64,000 nt of DNA from NCBI GenBank assembly GCA_038496445.1, contig JALMLS010000361.1, forward strand, positions 1 to 64,000, given 5' to 3'. Positions within the stretch are counted from its first letter, which is position 1. Each line of letters begins with the position of its first letter. The translations under genes were made by a program, and so were the position numbers. The notes under the pieces are model-generated. The model was not told the DNA's origin and ran no database searches. It was given only the letters and a program-made list of their open reading frames with translations. This document shows, in pieces, positions 30,524 to 33,962 of the stretch. Source of the stretch: Trichosphaerium sp. ATCC 40318. Its lineage: Eukaryota > Protista > Tubulinea.

Positions 30524-33500
30524 TTATTTACAAAAGGAAATACTATAGATGTCTTGGTAAAAATCTACAAAATGCATCTTGACATCAGCCTTTACTACTT
30601 CTGTAATTTCTTTCCATTGATTTATGTTTTGCTTTGATAAGCATATATCAGTAACACATTCCCTTTTTGCAGCTATAATCTGTTCTTTCAAGTTCTCAAC
30701 TGGCAACACCTTGCCATGTAGTGTAACCTCTCCGGCTATAGCTAAATGTGGCTTAACAGCTTTGTTAAGCGCTAGAGAAAGCAACGCTGATACCTTTTGT
30801 TAATCTATTAGTTTAGCCTTTATATATGTTTTACGTACCATAGCACATCCTGCAAATGAGCCTTCTTTGTCTGAAGCACCATCAGGCAAGTGCATGTGAA
30901 TGATATTCTGAAGAGAAGTCAGAAAGATTTGAGAAAAAAAAATCCTGTGTTGGTACCTTTGCAAAGAACGTGTTGGTTTTATCCATTTTGTACAATATGT
31001 TCTTTGCAAATGTATAAGCTACAGAAGCACTTTCTCGCATAACATCACCAATACTTCCTGTCACTGTGAGCATGTCATCTATCTGCGACTATTCGAAAAA
31101 CCGTCAGAAAAACTCAAGAATTTTTTTAAAGTGAGGTACCTTCGCTTCTAGTGCTGACGTCTCAACATACTGAACTTTACCCACAGGTACCCCAGAAAAT
31201 CCTGTAGCAACGCCTACAGGTGTCTCATTATAGTATCTAAATTTTGAAGTACGTTAACAAGAAACCAAGGAAAAACAAGTTAAAGTAAGAAAAGAAGTAA
31301 TTAAACTGTAGTTCTTCTAATATACTAACAAAAACGCACTTGTGTGATGTGTATTTTGGAAATTTTATAAACTCATGGAGATTCTCCAAAGAGACAGTAA
31401 GACCCAAAGTGCTTCTTTTACTGACACCTCTTGATACTTTTAAAAAAGCTCCTTTTTGGTAAATCCTTCCAACAAGATTTTTTAATCCTCTGACACCATC
31501 TTCCATACAGTAATCTTGGATTAGTTTTACAAGAACTTCAGGTAAAATAGATACATCTCCCTAAGGTCAAGACATTAGGTTGAGGTGAAGTTGTTGAAGG
31601 ACAAAAGTATAAGGATAAGTAACCCAAACGTACTGGTTTTAGACCGGCAGCTTTGCGTTCAGAGTTTAGAAAGTATTCCTTTGCTATAGCAATCTTTTCT
31701 TCAAGTACATAACCAGATAACTGAATCACTTCTACCCGGTCTTGTATAGGCTTTGAAAGTGTTTTTAAAGTATTAGCTGTACAAATAAACAAAACCTGAA
31801 CAAGCAATTAGCATTTTAACAATAACAAAAACAACTGACCTTGGAGACATCAAATGGAAGATCTAAGTAGTGATCCCTAAAGTTTTTATTCTGAGAAGGA
31901 TCGAAGATTTCCAGTAGTGCAGCACTCGGTCTTGGTGAAGCAATTTTATCAATTTCTAAAAGACAATCAATCAAATTAGTTTTCAAATTTTTTGGATCAC
32001 GTGCCATCAATGAGTACGACAGGGTTGATAACACCAGCATTTTTAATGCTGCCTATGATATTACCAGGCGCAGCAGCGACATAGGTTCGTCTGAAGCCAG
32101 TAATATCTAAGAAAAACAGTTGGTTTAGACAGAAAACCGATAGGAAAATAGGTGTACCTGAAACGTCATGCATACCACCAACAGAAAACCGTACGAATTT
32201 TCTACCAAGAGCAGCAGCAATCGCTTTTGCTACACTTGTTTTTCCAGTGCCTATACGACGTTATGAGAGTGTGTTTAAGCAGGTTGAGCAACGTGCCTGG
32301 AGGTCCGAGAAGACACAAGACTTTACCAGCTATAGTATTTGTTCGTTTGCCAACTGCAATGAACTCAAGCACTCGTTCTTTAACATCTTCCAAACCAAAA
32401 TGGTGTTCATTGAGAACACCTAAAACGCTGTTATTACAGGCATAAGATGAAACCAATCACTAATTTATCATCGTACTCTGTGCATGTACAATATCAAAAT
32501 TATCTTTTGTTTGCTTTCCCCAAGGAAGCGATGATAATAAATCAAGATATCCAGCTATTGTATTATACTCTTGATGAGCAGTTTCAAGAACAGACAATCT
32601 GGCCTACAAGCAAGAGTCAGCGGAGGTGCTAAAAAGTAGTCATACAGCTTCTTCATTAAAAGCTTGCATAATCTCTTGTGGTACTCTCAAACGAGCCATT
32701 CTACTGCGATATTTTGCTATGAGTTCATCACCTCTTTTATGTACACCAGCAGCTAGTTTATGCCTCTCAAGTTCATCCATATCAAGCTCTAGAGTTATAT
32801 CTGGTACTGCTTGATCGCTTGCAATAACTGCAGCTGCTTGAGTAGCTTTTTCTTTCTCTCGAATCAAATGCAAGACTCTCTCAAGACGATCTTCTAAATT
32901 ATCTTTTTCAATGACGCTCTAAAACAATCAGGTTCTCTCTTCATTGCAGTAAATGTCAACTGTTTACTCAAACGTACTTGGAGCTCACGACTTGGATTTG
33001 TTCGGCAGAAGTTTGACAACAACACATCTACAGTATATTCGTGTCCGTACTGCATCATTAGGTGCCTATGGTTATACAACGTAAATAAAACAATGGTTGT
33101 ACTAAACGCACTTTGAAGATATGAATTCAGACGGCGTAAAATGCTTCTTAATAGTACGAAATACTTGCTCCTGAAGGCTGTGTAATTTTTTTTGATCTGT
33201 TGATACAGTCTACAAAAAGTGTTAGCGCTAAAACCAGGTAATCTTCTCTTTGTACCTTTAAGTAACTAATCTTGGCTACACCAGGAGAGCCAGGAATGCG
33301 TCCTTTGAGTTCAATACGTCGCTTCACTGACACTTCAATGTGAGAACTGCCAGGTGCGCTAACAACTCTAGCCAGATACCCTAGAAAGACTTAGATTAGG
33401 AAAAAAAGAATATAACTCTTTTTGAACTCTTTGACGCACCTACTGAATAAACGTGTTCGAAATTGCGTTTGTCTGGTACTATTTTATGTTCTTCATCGGA

Positions 33501-33962
33501 CTTCTTTAAAGCAAGGCAAACATTCAACGTCTTGTGCTTCTTAACGAACCTAGACCAATTTCGTGCAAAGTACTTGTCAGATTTCAGTATGTTCTAAAGT
33601 TTATCAGTACGTTGGTGTACAAAACGGTTTTTTTGTTTTTGGAAAGCTTTTGACGTGGATTATTCATAGCTACCTTTGAAAGCTTCATTGACGGCGTATT
33701 TCGTGGTGCTTTGGGCGGATTACGGTGAATAAAGTCGTCAATAGGCCACAAGAAAGCTAAACGCTTTGTGAGTGCGTTTGAACTCTTGTACGATATCATT
33801 GTAGTATCGTGACGCGTATTTAGTACTACCTGTTGAGTCTCGCTTTCGCCGCCTTCCTCTTTTCTTTGTAGCTTTTGGTTGTTGTCTAGCAGTGGCACAG
33901 TAGCGCTGAAATAAGAGTGAGATTAATAAACTGCCACAGGTGTACCGTATGTTGACAAACAT
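30524..33962 (-). CDS. Lon (LONP1/PIM1-type) AAA+ homologue with inactivated protease dyad
   Basis: [61 protein letters not shown] and [12 protein letters not shown]. The protease motifs read EGSFAG and KEQ. Confidence 0.92.
31956..32004 (-). other. GC-AG intron (GCACGTGA) splitting Lon Walker B
   Basis: Restores LID-E-IDK exactly. Confidence 0.9.
32251..32296 (-). other. GC-AG intron (GCACGTTG) splitting Lon Walker A
   Basis: Restores GPPG-TGKTS exactly. Confidence 0.9.

Follow-up and report, generated by a model that had tools for sequence, protein, structure and literature searches.

Natural pseudo-protease paralogs are known from organellar AAA+ protease systems, ClpR being one of them. 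FtsHi is another (PMC8197885). Within the Lon family, mutants with an inactivated proteolytic site retain chaperone and assembly activity (PMC12994072), and proteolytically inactive Pim1 supports the assembly of respiratory complexes (Rep et al. 1996, as cited in PMC12994072). Non-catalytic Lon-like domains are required for the hexamerization of RadA and ComM (PMC11612176), and LonC from Meiothermus taiwanensis is a Lon-like protease without ATP-powered unfolding (PMC3391209). The searchable literature yielded no report of a LonA that is protease-dead by nature; Lon from Babesia microti was considered as a precedent and discarded, as its S946/K989 dyad is intact. Here, a 64,000-nucleotide stretch of genomic DNA from Trichosphaerium sp. 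ATCC 40318 (contig JALMLS010000361.1, positions 1 to 64,000, assembly GCA_038496445.1; the whole stretch is referred to as the window) was analyzed, the minus strand of which carries a LonA-type gene with Phe and Gln codons at the positions of the catalytic Ser and Lys.

LonA proteases such as LONP1 and Pim1 (MEROPS family S16) have a Pro directly before the catalytic Ser, 42 residues between Ser and Lys of the dyad, and 60 residues between the Lys of Walker A and the Asp of Walker B (PMC9569914). The dyad of E. coli Lon is formed by S679 and K722 (PMC9569914), and the catalytic loop of LONP1 comprises residues 844–855 (review, PMC12994072). The protein encoded in the window shares the domain order, length class, Lon_C and Lon_lid domains, LonA spacings, and ATPase motifs with LONP1 and Pim1. 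In contrast to these, it has Phe and Gln in place of the Ser-Lys dyad and Ser in place of the preceding Pro, lacks the GG turn as well as the Thr of MTGE, and shows a shorter helical region and a branch 2.5 times the median length.

Replacement of the catalytic dyad

The gene occupies window positions 33962..30524 on the minus strand, the same limits as those given in a first-pass annotation made from the sequence alone. The model comprises 18 exons that were joined by reading frame, splice signals, and Lon similarity (2445 nt, 814 codons; ATG at 33962, stop codon ending at 30524), and its product is a LonA/LONP1-type protein of 814 amino acids (Table 1). In a HMMER search against PDB chains, exon 17 aligned without gaps to human LONP1 and placed Phe720 at Ser855 (7oxo_A, full-length numbering). 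Exon 18 aligned with human LONP1 (ILPVGGIKEKTIAAKR) likewise without gaps (E 4e-17) and placed Gln763 at Lys898. The distance between F720 and Q763 of 43 positions, equal to 42 intervening residues, keeps the spacing of Lon proteolytic domains (P-domains). Both dyad substitutions had been proposed in the first-pass annotation together with the loss of the GG upstream of the catalytic Lys, and all three were recovered in these alignments, with E758 and N759 in place of GG. Either dyad residue is lost by a single base change (TCN to TTT and AAG to CAG).

The replacements extend beyond the dyad. The LonA-signature Pro before the catalytic Ser is substituted by Ser719 (TCA), and the Thr of the MTGE motif by A745. 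When a near-invariant column was defined as being ≥90% conserved in 41 full-length Lons aligned with the model, the P-domain kept 34 of 45 such columns. The losses were P719S, S720F, D717E, M744I, T745A, G758E, G759N, K763Q, L639F, P778S, and a Gly missing at 644, the latter belonging to a column of the GLAWT..GG strand; nearly all of them map to three places, namely the loop of the active site, MTGE, and the turn preceding the Lys. The product has neither the Ser-Lys dyad of S16 peptidases nor the Pro-before-Ser signature of LonA. With Phe and Gln in the dyad columns, the protein thus classifies by sequence as a non-peptidase homolog.

Conservation of the ATPase motor

The first-pass annotation had listed Walker A, Walker B, pore loop, sensor-1, and Arg finger as retained, and the spliced product contains all of these motifs. 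Walker A (GPPGTGKT) spans G392–T399 with K398, Walker B contains D459/E460, and the pore loop RRTY434V, N506 of sensor-1, the Arg finger R518, and R576 of sensor-2 are kept. Between K398 and D459 lie 60 residues, which is the LonA value. In the AAA+ module, 72 of 87 near-invariant columns are preserved; most of the 15 altered columns show conservative exchanges (I/V, L/F, E/D, S/A, G/A), and none of the 15 falls on a motif residue.

The overall architecture is that of LonA, with a long N-terminal domain and helical region, an A-type AAA+ module, and a Lon_C (S16) fold domain. Alignments of the model with full-length Lons by phmmer span residues 62–70 to 812–814. The N-domain is divergent and alignable from approximately residue 45–70, and single-exon Pfam matches were not significant in this part. 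In the helical region, a shorter and different sequence stands in place of the canonical '...EQLK.I.KELG' segment.

Expression and splicing

Logan contigs from four public runs (organisms coded A, B, and C; several studies) were placed on the gene; represented as contigs, the runs allow no reading of expression level, transcript ends, or strand. Most contig pieces matched the gene at ≥99% identity. The contigs exactly skipped the predicted introns 3, 4, 8, 10, 11, 13, 16, and 17 (eight joints), and a 14-nt loose end at 32918, which corresponds to the end of exon 6, supports intron 6 as the ninth. The joint 31955 to 32005 (run X3) has the ends CT..GC, showing that splicing truly removes this GC-AG intron within Walker B. 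Contig cover was absent over 33575–34096 in the four runs, leaving exons 1 and 2 outside the RNA-supported part of the model.

A 404-nt contig from run X3 is spliced through exons 16–18 and covers the codons of both Phe and Gln unchanged. The contig piece 30836–30907, which includes the Phe codon, showed 0 differences to the genomic sequence, and in the piece 30578–30790 the sole listed difference away from the contig ends was 30710 C>T, a synonymous AAG to AAA exchange at Lys753. The gene is thus expressed, and the dead codons are not edited. Transcript data had been named in the first-pass annotation as a check on both points: eight joints plus the loose end from the four runs document an expressed and spliced gene, and the transcripts encode Phe and Gln rather than Ser and Lys.

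In an X1 contig (31525–32106), introns 11, 12, and part of intron 13 are kept, while intron 10 is removed. This contig points to intron retention or to transcripts that were only partly processed.

Relatives and phylogenetic placement

A HMMER search with exon 18 was carried out in a library of 1.84 billion representative proteins, in which the protein of the window itself is absent. The best 150 matches shared ≤51% identity. Ser and Lys occur in 123 of the 149 aligned best matches, and a further 17 are fragments without the Ser column; the combination of Phe and Gln was found in none of the 149. A word search with exon 18, which could reveal only proteins of 49–156 amino acids, gave no candidate relative. 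Scanning metagenome contigs of the Joint Genome Institute (JGI) for relatives of exon 18 gave 26 loci, all of them distant (29–47%) and none sharing the dead site.

The best full-length matches (approximately 500–528 bits) were mitochondrial Lons from very different eukaryotes, including Naegleria lovaniensis, Brassica, Acytostelium, a red alga, an MMETSP transcript, and metagenome/Logan sequences. The top identities of the P-domain were 47% to the library protein P0069 and 46% to the Naegleria protein P0014. Assignment of P0069 to the same organism was rejected: its contig has a GC content of 52% and its Lon is a single long open reading frame, versus a GC content of 35–41% in the window, which points to a different organism. 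In a tree of 42 rows that included no LONP2, the model fell into a group of 36 rows consisting mostly of mitochondrial-type Lons (94 in the Shimodaira–Hasegawa-like approximate likelihood ratio test, SH-aLRT; not starred). No starred clade of this tree holds the model, which is loosely placed with Naegleria-type mitochondrial Lons. It has the longest end branch of the 42 rows, with 2.22 changes per column versus a median of 0.88; for the P-domain alone, the values were 1.23 versus 0.57.

Degenerate active sites were also observed in other Lons of the set. P0059 (locus L002) has Leu and Met at the catalytic positions, plus PDGAS and AMAGE changes as in the window protein; P0075 and P0067 have no catalytic Ser, and in P0140 the Lys is replaced by Arg. 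As orthologs, these four were rejected, since the window protein groups with none of them. P0059 groups with the canonical Lon P0071 (starred, 99) and its nearest relatives in the word search are canonical, while P0140 belongs to a starred set of three rows (96) that excludes the window protein. The losses therefore look independent, and degenerate Lon P-domains are probably a recurrent but undescribed phenomenon.

N-terminus, localization, and 5' end

The N-terminus had been described in the first-pass annotation as basic and presequence-like. Its basic character is evident, with 12 Lys/Arg and one Asp/Glu among the first 45 residues and the first acidic residue at position 42. The presequence-like character is ambiguous: residues 1–18 are hydrophobic with a low helical (amphipathic) moment of approximately 0.1, and the run KKRGRRRKR looks like a nuclear signal or nucleic acid-binding patch at least as much as like the tail of a presequence. 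The product ends with ...SISFCK and is therefore without the peroxisomal targeting signal type 1 that marks peroxisomal LONP2. An organellar location is suggested by the placement among mitochondrial Lons and by this ambiguous N-terminus.

On the plus strand, a divergent neighboring gene starts with an ATG at 34105 (MARRKKLREDIESCKERWTDGELE...); in X1 and X2 contigs (34097–34176 and 34247 onward), splicing joins the end of its first exon at 34176 to 34247. The start codons of the two genes are approximately 140 nt apart, which tightly bounds the 5' end of the Lon gene and makes a shared bidirectional promoter likely. An upstream ATG at approximately 34008 on the minus strand (33963–34010) is the beginning of a 40-codon frame overlapping the proposed start codon. 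This frame would be an upstream open reading frame if transcription begins upstream of that ATG.

Search for a second Lon

Searches by tblastn revealed no second Lon in the window, which represents 64 kb of a >80 Mb genome. In run X2, a 1838-nt contig (depth 16.9) matched only 34 nt of exon 9 (32374–32407, the HxGLxxVKxR motif) with four mismatches. On the strand of the gene, its flanks read ...LKRAQKVLD... and ...RIIEYLAVLK... In 36 of 41 aligned Lons, EFIAV or a near variant is found where the contig reads EYLAV, and only two have Tyr there. Departing from EFIAV in this way, the contig looks like a peroxisomal or bacterial Lon rather than LONP1, and it appears to represent another Lon-family transcript in the same sample. 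The 185,579 prokaryotic species genomes searched gave no exact match to either of its two 30-nt flanks, and the JGI metagenomes gave none to one of these flanks. The contig could derive from a peroxisomal or other Lon of the organism itself, or from an unsequenced bacterium.

Discussion

We consider it rather probable that the gene encodes an expressed, selectively maintained, and proteolytically inactive member of LonA of the mitochondrial LONP1 type, an assignment that is read from sequence and transcripts. There is good support for the earlier proposal that this is a natural pseudo-protease whose AAA+ motor is intact: the dyad and at least four further near-invariant residues of the active site are replaced, the transcripts carry the same codons, and the frame and ATPase motifs are maintained. 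When the coding sequence was allowed to evolve neutrally in simulations, an open frame survived in 10% of the copies at 0.02 substitutions per site, in 0.1% of them at 0.05, and in no copy at 0.1. The frame of 814 codons and all 17 splice sites are nevertheless intact in spite of a branch of 2.22 changes per column. Together with the long end branch and the concentration of losses in the active site, this argues for a maintained pseudo-protease and not for a decaying copy. The conservative changes in the motor, combined with radical changes that are confined to the catalytic center, give the same pattern of a maintained pseudoenzyme. As further indirect evidence of purifying selection, the polymorphism at 30710 is synonymous.

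Several observations weigh against this assignment. No ortholog with the same substitutions was found in the best 150 library matches, the word search, or the JGI metagenome contigs, and an intact LONP1 of the same organism was not seen in the 64-kb window. The acceleration spans the whole protein and not the P-domain only, so that it could reflect a fast-evolving lineage. Exons 1 and 2 and eight of the introns are without RNA support. Finally, Ser719 lies directly before Phe720 and Lys761 two residues before Gln763, which leaves a formal chance of a non-canonical site.

That the protein is a paralog standing beside an intact LONP1 is likely, judged from general knowledge of Lon distribution and from the long branch. 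Conversely, the protein might be the sole mitochondrial Lon of the organism, in which proteolysis was abandoned, perhaps left to ClpXP and membrane AAA proteases, and the motor kept for chaperone or mitochondrial DNA work. A sole Lon would fit the lack of a second LONP1-type gene in the 64-kb window, the peroxisomal or bacterial type suggested for the one further Lon-family transcript seen in a run that includes this gene, and the loose placement with Naegleria-type mitochondrial Lons. We regard it as unlikely, however, since the search spanned one window of a much larger genome, and the 2.5-fold branch together with a dismantled site is the usual signature of a released duplicate. To our knowledge, every aerobic mitochondriate eukaryote examined retains a catalytic LONP1. 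If a respiring protist did have this protein as its sole Lon, it would be the first eukaryote known with a Lon motor but no Lon proteolysis; the non-proteolytic role in chaperoning, assembly, or mitochondrial DNA maintenance would be the indispensable one, and the universality of Lon proteolysis in aerobic mitochondria would be overturned.

A transcribed but decaying duplicate, that is a young pseudogene not yet interrupted by a stop codon, appears improbable. Its catalytic residues are lost by one base change each, the X1 contig 31525–32106 retains introns, and no ortholog is known, as might be expected of such a copy; frame and splice sites are, however, intact on the longest branch of the tree, where already at 0.05 substitutions per site almost no simulated copy stayed open, the ATPase motifs are fully kept with conservative changes elsewhere in the AAA+ module, and at least seven separate changes in the active site speak for a long history and not for a recent accident. 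Even less probable is retained proteolytic activity by means of catalytic residues that have shifted or been taken over by others, such as Ser719 paired with Lys761 or with a different base. The nearness of these two residues to the dyad positions and the retained P-domain fold with its 34 conserved columns would be compatible with such an arrangement, but along with the dyad the site has lost the Thr of MTGE, the GG turn, and the Pro that precedes the Ser, and a Ser one position before the nucleophile column occurs in none of the 149 matches. A shift by one residue at the start of a helix and by two residues along a helix would also be expected to redirect the side chains. An artifact, whether through an error of assembly or base calling or through RNA editing that restores Ser and Lys, is very improbable, since both codons recur in an independent spliced contig from a public run, at least five further changes in the active site accompany the dyad substitutions, and the gene is nuclear with spliceosomal introns.

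For a maintained pseudo-protease, the engineered inactive Lons (the catalytic-Ser mutant of Pim1 and LONP1 S855A) offer a functional model, as in both cases the ATPase is kept and the nucleophile removed; in contrast to these laboratory point mutants, the protein described here is natural, has the whole active center altered, and is encoded by an expressed gene. The dead Lon_C domain may have been kept as a ring-forming scaffold of a LonA-type hexamer, similar to the catalytically silent Lon fold that serves as hexamer scaffold for an ATP motor in RadA/Sms and ComM. In those proteins, however, the fusion partner of the Lon-like domain is a RecA-like or MCM-like ATPase that moves on DNA, whereas the window protein has a complete LonA motor and N-domain. 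The N-domain would bind substrates, and the ATPase would thread or unfold proteins without cleaving them. Such a hexamer could act as unfoldase, holdase, chaperone, or assembly factor, like proteolytically inactive Pim1; alternatively, the protein may be a non-cutting subunit that tunes a catalytically intact Lon in mixed rings. By analogy, roles in unfolding, in DNA binding, or in mixed hexamers, as already envisaged in the first-pass annotation, are conceivable. The gene most likely originated as a lineage-specific duplicate of the mitochondrial Lon of the organism, which would then have evolved approximately 2.5 times faster than typical Lons.

Among organellar AAA+ proteases, FtsHi can be regarded as the closest conceptual precedent. 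FtsHi and ClpR have also lost catalytic residues, are still expressed, and form motor or structural subunits beside active paralogs; they differ from the window protein in belonging to families M41 and S14 and in being plastidic, whereas the latter is presumably mitochondrial. LonC has likewise lost one of the two activities of the Lon family, but keeps the protease with a degenerate ATPase, so that the window protein is its mirror image. If the assignment is correct, the list of organellar pseudo-proteases would be extended from FtsHi and ClpR to the Lon family. A natural, expressed motor-only Lon would then be an evolutionary experiment supporting a chaperone and assembly role that is separable from proteolysis, and if it assembled together with an active Lon, a central mitochondrial protease would have a regulator built in. 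The weight of these implications is moderate, as they relate to one organism and are drawn from sequence.

Gene structure and neighboring features

The GC content of the window is 35–41%, and the Lon region is without a long open frame and reads as a chain of short exons. Matches by tblastn with five full-length Lons, including the Naegleria-type, were confined to these exons within the 64 kb. The 17 introns have lengths of 42–103 nt; 15 are of the GT-AG and two of the GC-AG type, and all 17 have usable splice sites. For intron 9, the splice listed in Table 1 is the only one that restores GPPG/TGKT and preserves the frame. Both GC-AG introns share the identical donor G/GCACGT, and each interrupts a nucleotide-binding motif.

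Table 1. Features of the Lon gene (positions refer to the window)
Feature	Position	Strand	Basis or remark
Exon 1	33962-33830	-	tentative, start codon without RNA support
Exon 2	33756-33674	-	tentative; introns 1-2 without RNA support
Exon 3	33572-33440	-	alternative in-frame acceptor 21 nt upstream
Exon 4	33380-33256	-	
Exon 5	33209-33112	-	
Exon 6	33065-32978	-	
Exon 7	32918-32646	-	
Exon 8	32603-32477	-	
Exon 9	32419-32297	-	
GC-AG intron 9 inside Walker A (GPPG/TGKT)	32251-32296	-	frame and homology only, no RNA joint
Exon 10	32250-32158	-	
Exon 11	32106-32005	-	
GC-AG intron 11 inside Walker B (LID/EIDK)	31956-32004	-	RNA joint 31955 to 32005, run X3
Exon 12	31955-31840	-	
Exon 13	31795-31634	-	
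Exon 14	31560-31340	-	Pfam Lon_lid match
Exon 15	31236-31140	-	
Exon 16	31088-30957	-	Lon_C (PF05362) 5.5e-06
Exon 17	30907-30839	-	holds Phe720 codon
Exon 18	30793-30524	-	Lon_C (PF05362) 1.2e-18; holds Gln763 codon
N-terminal extension and start of Lon N-domain (MFVNIRY...)	33674..33962	-	exons 1-2, tentative
Lon N-terminal domain and long helical (HI/CC) region, divergent	32477..33572	-	phmmer alignments
AAA+ module and lid	31340..32419	-	motif residues, Lon_lid match, conserved-column count
Lon_C proteolytic-fold domain, degenerate active center	30524..31236	-	residues ~626-814; Pfam Lon_C, PDB alignments
Phe720 (TTT) at catalytic Ser (human S855, E. coli S679)	30854..30856	-	gapless alignment
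Gln763 (CAG) at catalytic Lys (human K898, E. coli K722)	30680..30682	-	gapless alignment

Elsewhere in the window, positions 11–1546 on the plus strand contain an open frame of 511 amino acids with a DDE_1 transposase domain (5e-12), and a frame of 338 amino acids with leucine-rich repeats is located at 53427–54443 on the same strand.

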